The notes: generated by a model not told the origin, from the sequence alone. Shown: positions 54,080 through 61,570, counted from the first letter of the stretch. The stretch: DNA of 64,000 nucleotides from Amoeboaphelidium protococcarum X5 (GCA_023515725.1 JALDTO010000013.1:93715-157714); one strand, 5' to 3'. Translations and numbers: made by a program.

Positions 54080-55440
54080 TGAAATGTCAGTTTTATTGCA
54101 ATTTGTTGACAGGTTAATTCTATTGATTAAATGACAAAGCGATCGACGCGCTTTACCTTCTGCCGATAAAACTCTGTTGTTTATCACCTGTCAAAACATT
54201 GAATCTGCAACTGTATGACACACATTGCACTTATGATCAAAAGAAAAAGCTCAAGACTAACAGAAAATGAGGATAAATGTCATCTAAAAGTTGAAAAGAT
54301 ATATTTCAAACTTCATAAGGTCAGTAACAGCTAATCAATCGCCTTGGTCACATTTCGCTTGCTCCTCTTTCAAATCTTGAACATACTCCCACGACTCCAT
54401 GGCTTCATACCATCTCTAAGCACCATCTCGATGCCTAGTGCTTTTATTTTTTTACATGGGCTTTCCAAAGGAAAGGGAGCTGGTGAACCACTCGCCCGTC
54501 AGTCCTTGACAAACACTAAATCAACTGTTTACTAAGTCAATAACTAGGATTCTAATTAAAGACCCACTCTTCGATTGAAGAGACCCATAGGGCTGTTGCG
54601 TCCAAATCACAAATATTAATATCTAATACAGTGAAGTGCCTGCCAGTTGAATATTATTAGTGATGTCGCACAGAAAGACTTCGGATACATCTCGTACCCA
54701 GCGAGCCCCATGGTCGTTAAATATCACAAGATTAAGACATTCAGATGAGACATACAGGGACGGACGGGACAGGAGAGAAGTACATGACAGAAGATCATAT
54801 ATTAAACATTGCATCTTTACCACAGCCTACACACACAAAGCAGATGAAGCAAAGCGGTAATAATGTAAATTAAACGTATAAACTTAGCTGATATATAGCA
54901 GAAGTAACTAATGGCACATTGTGGCAGTAATGATGTCAATCCAGGGCGCATTTTAAATGCCAGGTATAATCTTGAACTTTGATTGCGAAAGAAGAAGATA
55001 ACCACTTATCAGACCATTTTATAGACATTGATGGCATCAGTAACCTTTGATCACATCATTGATCACTCCCCAGATTGGCTTGGCATCAAAACCAGTACAC
55101 CAAAGCTTTATCACGCACACTCTGTTTTCAACTAAGGGAATTACGCAATACTCCAATTTAGTGGTTTTATTACTTTACTGATTGAGCTACTTCAGTACAT
55201 TACAAAGTGGAAACAACATTACTAAACAGCGCATACCGAACTTCACAGACACCCCAAAATAAATGTGCAGAAATTGTGCGCTACAAGACTAGAAGCCAAT
55301 TCTATTCGGTCCATGCGACGAGCTTCCAAGATTTATCGGAAACAATTTTATACAAACTGCAAGAAAAGCGATAGCGCTGGTAAAAAGAAAGTGGAAGATC
55401 AAACTAAGATGAAATGTAAATCAGTTGGACGAGACTACAT

Positions 55441-55851
55441 TCATTGCTAGATTTTAAATCTTTCGGTTTCAGCCCTTCGCTCCTCTGATATTGAGCCTTC
55501 AATAAGCTCTCTTCTCAGAGCATTGGACATTTCCGGTCGGTAGTCTTAATTGATCTACCCCAGCATTACCATCTTGAGGCGCAATGTATTCCTCGCCACC
55601 TCCAGAAAGTCACCACCTTGTCTCTTGGCGGCCAGCGCAGCAAGATACACTGATCGCAGCACCAGGGCATGGTAGGCTTCTCCAATTGCTTCAAAATAAG
55701 TTTTGAAGAAGCCGTTGCTGAGAATCTCTTGCACCGGAATTGGACACCCAGGAACATTAAGGCCAGCGTTTGCTTCAGGTCTAGCCATAGGATTAATTAT
55801 GGCGCCAGTCCTTCTAATCGCGGATCTTGTTTGTCTTTATTGTCTTGGCAT
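55441..55851 (-). CDS. Small orphan protein, about 136 aa (alternative ATG at 55935)
   Basis: ATG-to-TGA open frame MPRQQRQTRSAIRRTG...ERFKIQQ with TAR=Gln. Confidence 0.5.
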
Positions 55852-56199
55852 TTCGAATAGTGGTGGAGAAGAGAAACTAGCAGCACTGATGGGGCTTATA
55901 TTTCGATTGATGGATATCTTTAAACGGAATGACATCAAACCTGTTTTAAACAGACCCATATACGAGCCTCCAATAACTGTGGTACTCATCAATCGACACG
56001 TTTTATAATAAAGTTTTCATATGCAGAGAGCAAATATTCGAAACGTTTGATGAAACAATATATCTCAAACACATTGAAACAATTTGAAATCTTTTCATCT
56101 CTGCACTTACAACATTGAACAAAAATTTAACAATCAAAGTTGGAGAACGCTTAAATGAATTTAATTTAAATGCATACAGAATATTTATTGCAACTTCAT

Positions 56200-56706
56200 T
56201 CAATTCGTCATTGTCGATTGCGCAACGCTTGTAGGAGTAATTTGGGGAGCCTCTTTGGTGCCAATAGCAGTTGCCTTCCCGGACGCAGTCTTTTACTTCC
56301 CAACCTTGCTCTTACTGAGTACTACCTTAGGATTATCTGTTCTACTGGAAGAAGCCTTGTTATTTGTAGTCTTAGTCTTACTAGAAGCGGCTTTTGAGGT
56401 ACTAGTCTTGGTGGAAGTCGTCTAGATGGAAACACTGTTACTTGAGCCAGTCTTTGTGGATGCTACCTTACTTTAAGTTGTCTTTTTCAATGCAGACTTC
56501 TTAGATTTGGTTTTGGCCGCAGCAGCAATTAACTTGGATGCAGCGTTGGACTTATCTGTACTGGACGAAGCAAGATTAGGATTGTTCATTTTCGCTGATT
56601 ACTGTGCCGCTTCAGCTTCAGACTTTCTGTACTGATCAACTGCGAGGTCTTGAGCCAACTGCCGTGCAAGTTTTTTAGTCTGGGCAGATACTTTTATTTT
56701 TGGCAT
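56200..56706 (-). CDS. Basic Lys/Ser/Thr/Ala-rich protein, 168 aa (composition like a histone H1 tail)
   Basis: MPKIKVSAQTKKLARQ...AAAAKTKSKKSALKK...TGA. Confidence 0.55.
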
Positions 56707-56851
56707 TGTGTGTTTCAATTTGAAGAAGAAGTAACTGCGCATGTAAAAAAAATCGATGACGTGTGATTGAGATCAGACCAGTTCAATTTGGCATCAACAC
56801 CATAACTCCTGGTTTCATGCTCTGAATTATAGTTTAACTTTGGAATCAACA

Positions 56852-57160
56852 ATGGCGAAAAAGTATTTCTCGAACTCGTAACGTAGGCGTCATTAAATGC
56901 GTCTAAAGCTGAAATCGCTGGGTGTCGTCAAAGTTGATGACATTGTCTTGACTTCGTTTCTAAAGCTGTCTTTAGTTGGCCTCGACAACGATCATCTGGC
57001 AATCGAAGTGTATAATGAACTTTTGGATAGAAAGAGGAAGGTAACAAATGCATTCAAGTCTAAAAATTCCCATGCAAGTTTGACAGATTTCGCTTACATA
57101 TTGGAGAGTGGCAAGTTTGCATCTGACTTGAAGAAGAGACTGCGTTACAAGATGAAGTGA
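56852..57160 (+). CDS. Small basic orphan protein, 102 aa
   Basis: MAKKYFSNSQRRRHQMRLKLKS...LKKRLRYKMK-TGA; divergent from the 56706 gene. Confidence 0.55.
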
Positions 57161-57277
57161 TTAGACGTGACTTGGAATTTAAAAGTGATAAAAGAATCAA
57201 TCTAAAAGCTTAATAACATTGAAAGAATTTATCTGAATATATTCATTGAATTGAATTGAATTTCATTGCTATCACTA

Positions 57278-57724
57278 TCAAAAATTTCTATTTTCAATGC
57301 GAGGCACGTACTTCCTTGGAATGAAGAATGGATGCAAATTGCCAGCATTTTCAATCAAATGGCGGCCAATATAGTATGTCACCTGCGCCCAGAGAATCAG
57401 CATGATAGTCAAAGTCGCAGTATTAGCAGAAGGACTTGTTCTTCTTCCGCACCACGAAACTTTCAATTCCCTTGGTCAAACAGACAAAGCAGATTGTGGA
57501 AGACATTGGCTCGGGAGTAATCACCACCTGAGCATATTCATTTAGCAAATGAACAAATTGTCGAAGGGGAAATTATCCATTAAGACCAGATCGCTCCAGA
57601 ACATACGCTCCGTAGAAGATCAAATAATTCAGACGGTCCGTCTATTTCAGCTTTTCACCCTTCACAGGAAGTAGAGTTCTCACAAAATCTAACGCGACAC
57701 TTTTGTTAAAATGATAGAGTTCTA
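57278..57724 (-). pseudogene. 3' half of the interrupted compact Fanzor/TnpB-like RuvC gene
   Basis: ELYHFNKSVALDFV...YLIFYGA...VVITPEPMSSTICFVC...FCQYCDFDYHADSLGAGDI: RuvC-II E (57512), two CxxC, RuvC-III D (57398). In-frame stop at 57351, or 57278 after a frameshift near 57375. Confidence 0.82.
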
Positions 57725-57815
57725 CTGTATTTTTCACAATTAAGCAAACTAGGGACAGCAACGGATTTGCACCGCCGATCAGACTGTTGCGCGCGGAGCC
57801 TGGACTGATCATTAT
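57705..57815 (-). ncRNA. Candidate Fanzor omega-RNA (scaffold to element end, plus flank-derived guide)
   Basis: About 85 nt between the Fanzor stop and the element end, with stems GATCAG/CTGATC and GGCGG-TGCAAAT-CCGTT; position matches the known TnpB/Fanzor omega-RNA layout; 5' limit unknown. Confidence 0.6.
57725..57748. repeat. Terminal inverted repeat (end 3' of Fanzor)
   Basis: 57726-57738 TGTATTTTTCACA is the exact reverse complement of 61061-61073; similarity extends to about 24 nt. Confidence 0.88.
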
Positions 57816-59899
57816 TGAGGACGCGGAGGATCGTATCGAAATGGAACCGGCCTTTCACCATCGTCACGATTTCTTGCCAGAAAGATGTAGCGAATGTTAC
57901 GTGCTGCATTCACATCACGGTGCCAGATAGCTAAGCAATTGTTATTTGGACAATGCTTAATTCTCCATACTCGTGATTGACCAAGCTCACTCTCGCAATT
58001 ACTACATCTTTGACTGGTTCGATATTCAGGGACCAAGCGGACTCTGCAGCGTTTCTTCAGCTCATAAAACAGCCGCTTGTTAGGAGTCGCAGGATATCCA
58101 GGAGACGCAGTGTCAAAGTTGCCAGCGCCGTATGCAATGATGGTGTTATGGTCAAACTAACCATCTTGGCGGAGAGTCAGCATACGCGCCAAATTGTCAT
58201 AGGCCCTTTGGCGCTAGGAGAATAGCTTTCTCCTCAGCTTTCGCCACTTCTCAGGACGGTAGAAGCCAGTGAATGCATCTCTATGTTGCAGTACGTACTG
58301 CAAATGTTAGATGATCCCCAGAAACGAAGTTGATTTGGCGGAAGGAATCTGGGCCATGGCATTAACGACCTCTGGAGCTATTTCATTCCATGCAGCCTTC
58401 TTCTTTTCACCAAACTTTTCTCCGTTCTCTTCACGCCATCTAGCAGTCGTGTACACCAGCTCATGCGTTCCATCAGCAAACGGCGTCTGATCGGTTGGAA
58501 CATCTGCAATCCGGTCATCAGGACCACAAGAAGCAGCCAAAAGCACGCCACGATTGACGTCAATCCCGATAACGCGGGTCTCATTGTTTACATCCAGCGG
58601 TTAATATCCGGTACCATCGAAAGCGAACCCGTAGCGGCTAGCAGGAGGGGCAGGATAGGCAGGACGTAAAACGGAAGCAGAACAGCCAACACCATCGGAT
58701 GTAATGGAGTAGCCAAAACGTCTTCTCTGATTGCCAGTAGTGGAGACCTTGTTCAACTTGAAACATTGTGACCACAAAGCGTGAACATCCATCTGACGGA
58801 CATCTGGCAGATTAGCAGCAACACATATCTCCTTCAGCACATTGGAGGTGATCAGGATGTGTTTCTGCGTAAATCCATTTAGAGGCAGCAACGCGTAAAC
58901 GTTTAGTAGAGGACCTTCATTGTTTAGCAGATACTCCTCCTCATACATTTGATGATTATTCTCAAATGTACGAAGGATACGCCACATGGATTTCAGATAC
59001 AGATGCCAGTTGTTCTGAAGACTAGCCTTATCCATTGGGAGATTGCAAAGGATATATTGACGTGCACGCGTCTCGTAGTAGTCCATGTAATACACCACCA
59101 ATTCTCCGTTACCACAATTGTCGATGATTTCTGCAGGATAAGGAGGCATTTCTTCAATATCTTCAGGTGGGTTTATCAACGCCAAGACATAAACAGCAAC
59201 GGTGCAAACATCATCCTCCTCCAAACAGAAGCCGAGATGTTTTCGAAACTTGTGGCGCAGCCATTGTTTCAGCCTTGATGGCAAGTTTGTGCTTATATGT
59301 CTAGCGCAATCGTCATTGTGAGCTGAAGCCAAGGCAGTAACCATGTTTGAGTAGCCTCGCATGTCACACCAAAACAAGTCAGCAGGACGACGAGGTACAT
59401 AGTGTGCTTCAATAAACTCGTTTAAAGCCGCCCAGTTGCAGGTATTACGATTAAGCAGATCACGCCGCCTAGGATTAGCAATCAAAGAGCTGAAGAAGTT
59501 ACGCATCTACCCATTTGCGCCAAAGCGGATGTCTGGCATTGGAGTGTCAGGATTGTATACCAAATGATTAAGCACGAAGGACAGGAGAAGTCTGCAAGCC
59601 TCTACTTTGAGATCAGTACAACGCGAAACCAAATCACTTATCTCATGCTTCACCGCGTCGATTTTGCAAAATACATTTAAACCAATAGGTACAGCTACGT
59701 AGGCTTCAGCCACAGGTATTCCCATATTGTCTTGTGGTTTGGCAGCATTTTTCGCACGAGGGACATAATTGGGACACAGTTTACTGGATGAGCGCTTGTG
59801 ATCGTCGCGACCACATGCTTTACAATTTACTTCTCGTTGACGTTTACGCGGCGGTAAGGCACCACCGATATCAGCTACCTCTATAGGGGGATCTGCCAT
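57809..59899 (-). CDS. Fanzor1 RNA-guided endonuclease (eukaryotic TnpB homolog), intact, 696 aa
   Basis: One frame with 6 TAR=Gln codons. NLS-like PPRKRQR, CCHC knuckle, ITSDGVGCS, RuvC-I VIGIDVNRG (D 58561), IIAYGAGNF...P.TP, RuvC-II LVPEYRTSQRCSNC (E 58027), CPNNNC, RuvC-III WHRDVNAARNI (D 57916), RP tail. Confidence 0.93.
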
Positions 59900-59944
59900 T
59901 TCTGATTTTATTGAAGAAAAGAGTTGAAACCAGTCCGATTACGC

Positions 59945-59976
59945 TTTTATACCCAAAAAACCAACTTTATGATTGG
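59945..59976 (-). promoter_or_regulatory. CCAAT box and TATA box upstream of Fanzor
   Basis: Minus strand CCAAT (59976-59972) and TATAAAA (59951-59945), 45 nt before the ATG. Confidence 0.5.
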
Positions 59977-60479
59977 CAGAAAATGGCTCGGACGAATCTC
60001 AAAATGGAGTCCAGCTTTGCCAAATCTAATTTTAACCGCTAAGTCAAGTAGTTACTATAAATAGGAGGAAGCAGATCAACGTTAAGATCTTGACACAAGA
60101 TATAGACAGCCGCTAAATTGAGAAGTGACCAATGCGTCTATGGAACATCTAATGAAGTTAATCATCGGTTGAGCAATGAACGATATATATTTTGATTAAG
60201 CGCTATACATTTTGTTAAATTTATATTACGCATTATTGTACTTCGATTTACGCTTACATGGTAGTTTTGTTCGTGCGCAATTATATTGGTACACATCAAG
60301 GCTTAATGTAGACATTTGTCATAGTAAAAGAGTCTTCTGATTATGACTTTGAATAATCGGCGGACAGCTGCAGTATATACTGAACGGCTACAGTATATTT
60401 TCCCCCCTTTTGGTTCCTCTTAACAGCCTCTACTCTTAGGTTGCTGACGCTTGCAACAGATGCTTCAATCGCCTCGTTT

Positions 60480-61007
60480 ACCTACAATCATAGTAAGATG
60501 AGAATCGACTCCAACGAGCGTTCAATCGACAATATATATTCAAAGGCTGAACAGGCTTAAAGGATATGTTTTTGGTGATCAATGCTGGCATGATGCATGT
60601 CAATAAAAATCCACCAGTGCCCGTTGTAGATTTAACGCGTCGCCTCAGTCGTCGTGGATTGGTCGTCTCCGTCCCCAGATACCACAGTACAAAGCTCTGC
60701 TCATGTTGCCATCATGGGCTTCGGTTGGAAAAGGTTGGTGTTTACGACTGTCACCATACGAAGAGTAGAAGGCGCGTCCCCAAGTAGTCCCACCCTGTGC
60801 TATGTTGCTTTGATGCTTCTAGCTCCTTTCTGCATGTATCGTCCAGCTGTCCTGACCGTCAACAGAAGTAGGTGGAGTCAAGCTTAGCTTTTGCCCAAAT
60901 TGCTAAGTCTAAGGCCTACCTTATTTGTATATCGGGATGTCAACGCAACTTAAAGCATGCTACTGATGGCAGTAGATTTTGCGGAGAGTAGAGGACGCCC
61001 TGATTGA
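60480..61007 (+). pseudogene. Decayed second Fanzor (C-terminal remnant) inside the element
   Basis: LVINAG...PPVPVVDLTRRLSRRGLVVSVPRYHSTKLCSCC, then CPNC (60892) and YRDVNATQSM...GRPD (60930-61004), spread over three frames; RuvC-II Glu position reads Arg; 5' limit approximate. Confidence 0.78.
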
Positions 61008-61049
61008 AATCGTCGCGTTTGACACCACGCTTGACCTACTTTGTTGTGA

Positions 61050-61074
61050 TTCGCTTAAAATGTGAAAAATACAT
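61050..61074. repeat. Terminal inverted repeat (end 5' of Fanzor)
   Basis: TTCGCTTAAAATGTGAAAAATACAT followed by TA at 61075-61076. Confidence 0.88.
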
Positions 61075-61467
61075 TAATTGCAAAGAGAGGACTTAGTCGC
61101 TTGAGTAATATTCACGCATTTCTTGAAATCTACCAAGATACAAAGGCAGGCGATCTTAAAGAACCTTCAAATCTACAGTCTTCAAACTACGAGCAAACTC
61201 TCGACTTTATTCTGAATGCTGTTATACTGCTGCAGCAACAGTTGGCGATAGAATCTTCTTCATATAATCCTGCTTACTGATCACAACACGGACAGACTAA
61301 TCGTACACAATCTGATTCAGAGGTAATACTTGATTCTCCAGTTATGGCATGTATGATGATATCCAATTCTTTAAACCAGCATCTACGCCAATTTTTATAG
61401 CATGCTAATAGTTCAAGATCTAAGGTACATCAAACGTTATAGATTAACAGGACCTCGGACGATCCAT
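61075..61467 (-). pseudogene. 5' half of the interrupted compact Fanzor/TnpB-like RuvC gene
   Basis: MDRPRSCQ...AIKIGVDAGLKNW (RuvC-I D 61383)...VVISKQDY...SLKTVDL...EYYSSDQVLSLQL, 131 codons open up to the TA. Confidence 0.82.
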
Positions 61468-61570
61468 GAAAAACAGCAAATCGCGTCTACCTCTCTTTCT
61501 TCGGTATTGTTGATCATTAATTAGGACTTTTAATATCCAGAAGAAATCAGTCTCATTTTTATTGCAATAT

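Follow-up and report, generated by a model that had tools for sequence, protein, structure and literature searches.

A probable chance insertion of a Fanzor element into a Fanzor relic
The nested Fanzor locus described here is most likely a pogo-type Fanzor1 element, built from two right ends and inserted by chance in a Fanzor relic, and it offers a useful natural polymorphism. It lies in the genome of Amoeboaphelidium protococcarum, an algal parasite (aphelid). We place a probability of about 0.75 on the reading that the inner element, FzB, carrying an active Fanzor1, landed by chance at an ATTA in a Fanzor1 relic and that its guide targets its own empty allele; the identity of the flank as a Fanzor relic is incidental. 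FzB, a non-autonomous cut-and-paste element of the Tc1/mariner superfamily, would have inserted at its preferred ATTA site, which happened to fall where insertions would be tolerated, in a 5'-truncated relic belonging to an older Fanzor1 family. Mobilisation would have occurred in trans, probably by the pogo transposase of elements of a third Fanzor family, FzC, which have the same right end. An omega-RNA reading into the 3' flank would then yield a guide matching the uninterrupted allele, as it would for each copy at its own site, and the Fanzor would likely serve to cleave alleles that are precisely empty, with the element then restored by copying (restorative or allelic homing).

Genetic code and searches
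The window is the whole stretch of 64,000 nucleotides that was analysed, and its positions are used throughout. Under code 6 (TAA/TAG=Gln) the window holds 49 ORFs of at least 200 aa, compared with 3 under the standard code, and the frames at the nested locus are open only if TAA and TAG are read as Gln. UAR as Gln is already documented for A. protococcarum (PMC5304391). Stops of a RIP-like or pseudogene kind were rejected because TAA/TAG equal CAA/CAG in frequency in long host ORFs. Database searches used stop-free protein pieces or the identifiers of matched proteins, and joined frames were compared by local scripts. A literature search found no description of a Fanzor in Amoeboaphelidium.

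Junctions and empty alleles
A sequence-only reading of the window had proposed that a Fanzor transposon was inserted into a second gene of the Fanzor/TnpB family. This nesting is borne out by a joined frame collinear with a paralog and by the existence of empty alleles. The junctions fall where that reading had put them: on the minus strand the outer frame runs to ...TTG CAA T-TA, is interrupted by the element (61074-57725) and resumes at TA GAA CTC. Removing 57725-61074 with one TA gives ...SLQL-ELYHFNK... in one frame, gapless over 198 codons against the paralog on contig C264, with RuvC-I (IGVDAG) in the right flank and RuvC-II, C4 finger and RuvC-III in the left, again as proposed. Collinearity of the joined ORF with Fanzor had been named beforehand as the point on which the proposal could fail, and hhalign did align it, over the junction, with the inner Fanzor (E=4e-4). 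The proposed single frame thus stands, but not an intact gene, as about 285 N-terminal residues are missing and 2 nt are deleted (Table 1).

The empty site, predicted to be reconstructable, turned up as real DNA in two independent public runs, X8 (a 2013 biofilm metagenome) and X10 (a 2021 study; probably RNA, from a GT-AG intron skip). In contigs of both runs, position 57721 is joined to 61074, skipping 3,352 nt (the element plus one TA), and the 2-nt deletion is absent. The filled allele is bridged at both junctions in run X2, and a second assembly has it with the same frameshift; an assembly artefact was rejected on these two grounds. The X8 contig reaches 61784, and the upstream truncation junction of the outer gene is the same in this empty allele, so the truncation is older than the insertion or shared with it. 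JGI metagenome scans gave no match to the empty site or to outer-family relatives. At 57648, 73 bp from the insertion joint of FzB, X8 shows loose ends on both sides; the X8 relic seems to carry a second, unrelated insertion there, without TIRs, whose ends had no match in the A. protococcarum genome.

Table 1. Features of the nested locus (window positions)
Feature	Position	Strand	Basis or remark
Patchwork segment with outer relic (7 kb)	54409..61545		Missing from homeologous region on C98
Outer Fanzor relic, 3' piece (RuvC-II, C4 finger, RuvC-III)	57278..57722	-	2-nt deletion at 57374
Predicted guide, from outer gene's 3' half	57703..57722	-	After PMC10432273, PMC13565253
3' TA target-site duplication	57723..57724		Junction reading; shared ends among copies
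Predicted omega-RNA scaffold, from stop codon through to the element's end; terminal stem includes TIR and TSD	57723..57811	-	Low variation
Inner non-autonomous pogo-type TIR element FzB, 3,350 bp	57725..61074	-	Copies with common ends, unrelated flanks
Intact Fanzor1 ORF, 696 aa (TAR=Gln)	57809..59899	-	RuvC D447, E625, D662; C4 zinc finger
Left end of FzB: inverted, decayed 3' end of FzC family	60580..61074	+	85% to intact FzC, C249 and C207
5' TA duplication inside ATTA motif (predicted TAM)	61075..61078	-	ATTA at 8/9 intact left junctions
Outer Fanzor relic, 5' piece (RuvC-I, D at 61381-61383)	61075..61482	-	71-75% to paralogs on C264, C205

The inner element and its Fanzor1
FzB bears both a TA duplication and terminal inverted repeats, as pogo/Tc1-mariner DNA transposons do; the repeat arms (57723-57741 and 61058-61076) are 19 nt long and 89% complementary. 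The genome holds four full copies whose ORFs are intact (96-100%), as well as some eight shorter relatives (90-92%) without nt ~165-730, all with common ends and unrelated flanks, including the 3' flank. The recurrence of ATTA at left junctions has a binomial p of about 4e-8, and by analogy with SpuFz1 (PMC10432273) this motif may be the TAM. Two left junctions are rearranged: copy L004 repeats 12 nt of its own 3' flank, and copy L006 shows a fold-back.

The inner gene was compared with the Fanzor1 motif, D-X(125,275)-[TS][TS]-X-X-C4 finger-X(5,50)-RD with the catalytic E just before the finger, and displays D447, E625, T628-S629, the C4 finger and R661-D662. Its C-terminal piece matches PF07282 above the cut-off (E=5e-12), its top PDB match, a weak one, is Parasitella Fanzor1 (E=0.03), and dN/dS between FzB copies is about 0.2. 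The sequence suggests an active Fanzor1, and cleavage is predicted. Downstream of the stop codon, 87 nt show 0% variation among long copies and 5% between long and short copies, against 7% in the coding sequence and 12% in 5' non-coding DNA. This low variation fits the predicted omega-RNA scaffold; the folding energy of the region is ordinary (z=0.1). In run X10, word depth is far higher in contigs with 3' ends of FzB type or sequence of FzC type than over the FzB coding region, a contrast that covers window 57570-57957 and 60643-60868 and comes from contigs that give neither strand nor level.

The outer gene is a broken copy
Judged from its sequence, the outer gene is a relic with no functional Fanzor. 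Its match begins at residue 285 of a 494-aa paralog model, so that the N-terminal WED/REC half, on which binding of RNA and TAM depends, is missing, and host DNA resumes by 61546; the 2-nt deletion falls directly after RuvC-III. The outer gene belongs to a Fanzor1-like family on three grounds: the hhalign match to the inner Fanzor, the continuation of outer-family relatives into PF07282 matches, and the Atlas neighbours of the outer paralog and a relative, which are eukaryotic/NCLDV (giant-virus) Fanzor-like clusters with DUF8286 and TNB. Both paralogs, on C264 and C205, are frameshifted, and that on C205 has also lost its end.

The joined frame retains D29, E202 and D240 with the C4 finger in Fanzor spacing, HAD replacing HRD, and relative to the uninterrupted C264 paralog it gives dN 0.19, dS 1.46 and dN/dS 0.13 over the same 198 codons, with no gap. 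Such conservation could be expected if the truncated gene encoded a host-used RuvC-only protein of ~280 aa, starting at a Met (61467) in frame upstream of RuvC-I and serving as a conserved homing target in the manner of a homing intron. All three catalytic residues are kept, and X10 has an open frame with probable transcript coverage; that X10 contigs, probably RNA, cover the uninterrupted relic without the frameshift counts against a chance insertion. However, the low dN/dS may be inherited from the transposon-gene past, the insertion and the frameshift are present in two cultured strains (both assemblies), X8 seems to bear another insertion, the gene is missing altogether from the C98 homeolog, and protein searches gave no RuvC-only homolog. 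A domesticated nuclease would be fixed, syntenic, intact and under selection, and the outer gene is open only in X10. We therefore regard a host-used protein as decidedly improbable: only a half of the outer gene survives truncation, and different insertions disrupt two of the three allele types observed, making its domestication unlikely.

The surrounding patchwork segment (54409-61545) is built from pieces present on C264 and C182, and its position on the C98 homeolog is occupied by a tyrosine-recombinase-like ORF (Crypton-like, by eye; L041:4211-5446). The flank at 55559-57170 and that of the C264 paralog are ~95% identical, against just 75% for the Fanzor gene itself, a contrast that could reflect recombination between subfamilies, or cargo. 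A chimeric Fanzor relic at L055:8940-10310 (P0005; P0006 is similar) combines an outer-family N-half (78%) with an FzC-like RuvC half (37%).

FzC, a pogo transposase and the left end of FzB
The left end of FzB contains the RuvC-II, finger, RuvC-III and end of an FzC gene, frameshifted and matching PF07282 at E=0.001; short FzB copies retain 161 nt of it, with RuvC-III codons recognisable. FzB and FzC also have a common right end, and FzB would thus be a composite of two right ends from different Fanzor families, as inferred from these sequences. A pogo-type transposase ORF, with DDE_1 above the cut-off and a weak Tc5 HTH, lies ~1 kb upstream of FzC and follows a TTA-CTGTA end. The pogo element's own left end matches the common FzB/FzC right end just loosely. 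No DDE transposase was found inside FzB. FzB is therefore classed as non-autonomous, and the pogo transposase of FzC elements probably moved it in trans.

A candidate autonomous pogo-Fanzor element on C207 (L039:3364-7391, L051:1-700) comprises a pogo transposase ORF followed by an intact FzC Fanzor of ~760 aa, and it is seemingly tandem or duplicated across assembly gaps. A 660-bp MITE (C205:742106-742765) has pogo-type TIRs that resemble the FzB/FzC end closely (21/25, own count). Another pogo element (L035:404-2406), whose 26-nt TIRs are perfect, occupies a TA at which the window (about 55858) has no insertion. A TIR-like pair on C146 was discarded, as it represents host genes and no element.

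Excision has left its mark at one site. C245, the homeolog of the C205 site of an FzB copy, carries TA-CAG-TA (about 228.3 kb; L060 about 1495-1505; one case). TA plus 3 nt plus TA is the classic Tc1/mariner excision footprint. The sequence shows cut-and-paste excision, and the footprint has removed the ATTA motif.

The inverted FzC end might itself work, making an omega-RNA of its own that FzC protein would load in trans and that would guide a second cut, on the upstream side. The left end of all copies examined derives from FzC and includes its terminal stem region, intact FzC genes exist in the genome, and X10 contigs, which give no strand, pass from left ends into flanks. Yet past the terminal ~28 nt, long and short forms diverge by 28-32% in this end but by 7% in the coding sequence, long copies diverge from one another by 3-6% in it and by 1-2% elsewhere, and the FzC fold is no longer present in the window copy (z -0.1 vs -1.9). 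Beyond the TIR, then, the FzC-derived end is more variable among copies than neutral DNA; such rapid decay makes a second working guide unlikely, and we consider a two-headed element improbable.

Guide and target
With the guide starting after the 3' TA and the 5' ATTA as TAM, as the established rule has it, the predicted guide matches the uninterrupted allele of the locus, as had been anticipated. The further suggestion that it is aimed at intact copies of another RuvC-family gene did not hold: the genome has no intact copy, and the paralogs have AACT instead of ATTA at the TAM position and 6/20 guide mismatches. A genome scan for look-alikes of TAM plus guide returned 14 matches against 15 in the control, no excess. 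By sequence, the only target of the window guide is the allelic empty site, as it would be for any Fanzor insertion.

The sequence-only reading had also suggested checking whether FzB targets are enriched for Fanzor-like genes. When the copies were mapped and their flanks searched with three Fanzor families, the ~12 other copies interrupted no member of these families, and none of the Fanzor loci examined matched the guides of 12 of them exactly over TA+12 nt. These observations bear on a conflict between nucleases, in which selection would have favoured insertion of FzB into copies of a rival Fanzor family and the subsequent cutting of such copies. The guide necessarily comes from another Fanzor gene, and a further copy, on C211, has an FzC relic 130 bp away, bringing the sites in or beside Fanzor DNA to 2 of ~13, which counts against chance. 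Against conflict stand the want of any targetable paralog, the broken state of all three outer copies (3/3) and the silence of the 12 other guides in Fanzor loci; moreover, guidance to sites is not known for pogo-type transposases. The conflict explanation is largely refuted for this genome and seems to us very improbable indeed.

Across its 23.6 Mb the genome counts at least 40 Fanzor-like loci, and the probability of one Fanzor hit in 14 insertions is 2-6%, or 8-18% if only ~30% of this gene-dense genome tolerates insertions. Of the three options first offered for the nesting, a chance TA insertion fits best, and neither conflict nor domestication is supported, given that the allelic empty site is the sole target.

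Relation to known Fanzor and TnpB systems
The nesting itself is ordinary transposon piling. What the locus adds is a Fanzor element apparently assembled from the right ends of two Fanzor families. Within this one species there are Fanzor elements that are both intact and recent, a pogo transposase is available as a candidate, one excision has left a footprint, and isolates differ in whether the site is filled or empty.

FzB resembles SPu-1/SpuFz1 of Spizellomyces punctatus (PMC3627910, PMC10432273) in its single Fanzor1 ORF, short TIRs and TA duplication, in a conserved dinucleotide ahead of the 5' TA (CATA in SPu-1, ATTA in FzB) and in ~80-90 nt conserved between stop and right end. It differs in its 3.35-kb length, in having an inverted piece of another Fanzor as its left end and in its TAR=Gln host; a candidate transposase is present in its genome, whereas none was found for Spu-1. 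FzB and FzC are also comparable with the Mariner-Fanzor1 elements PGv-1, PUl-1 and PUl-4 (PMC3627910), which belong to the Tc1/mariner superfamily, duplicate TA and comprise autonomous (transposase plus Fanzor) and non-autonomous (Fanzor only) members with common ends. Chimeric elements are frequent among Mariner-Fanzor1 (PMC3627910). The FzC transposase, unlike those of PGv-1, PUl-1 and PUl-4, is pogo-type (DDE_1, Tc5 HTH); a literature search found no described case of Fanzor combined with pogo, which does not itself prove that there is none.

The predicted roles of the FzB parts, a guide from the 3' flank, a TAM in the 5' flank and an empty-site target, are those of TnpB restorative homing in IS200/IS605 and IS607 (PMC13565253). 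Restorative homing has been shown experimentally for TnpB, and the evidence for homing in that review covers TnpB and IscB, not Fanzor (PMC13565253); what Fanzor cleavage does biologically has yet to be settled (PMC10432273). Unlike in TnpB systems, the predicted TAM of an FzB site can be lost to the footprint of DDE excision.

Hints of homing and escape
The locus may record more than a chance insertion, namely Fanzor homing in a wild eukaryote, with recent guide-directed spread of the filled allele and an empty allele that escaped through a change at guide position 1. We hold this possible but rather doubtful. The joint in X8 and X10 lies one base off the predicted position; the length of the X8 record is 702+74+28=804, with no letters between. 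The empty allele of both runs thus has A at guide position 1, where the window allele and both paralogs have G, a change deduced from joint coordinates rather than from letters and representing a single inherited event. The post hoc chance of this coincidence is 1-5%, by rough estimate. Escape from homing is a possible meaning of the change, one event and unproven.

The second hint comes from the two cultured strains, which show 0/1,525 differences on the guide side and 5/3,350 in the element, whereas the remaining segment diverges by 0.8% and the flanking genes by 2.5-4.5%. Homeolog conversion was rejected as a source of this valley, both strains being equidistant from C98. A young insertion shared by descent would produce an identical pattern. 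At another site, a contig of run X9 joins an element end to C245-type flank (a loose end), and the C205/C245 site seems to have been filled in both homeologs, which are 11% apart. Shared descent, a chance substitution or an old insertion could account for each of these hints neutrally, and none is proof. As filled and empty alleles exist, one of them with a changed first guide base, allelic homing and escape can be tested in natural material.
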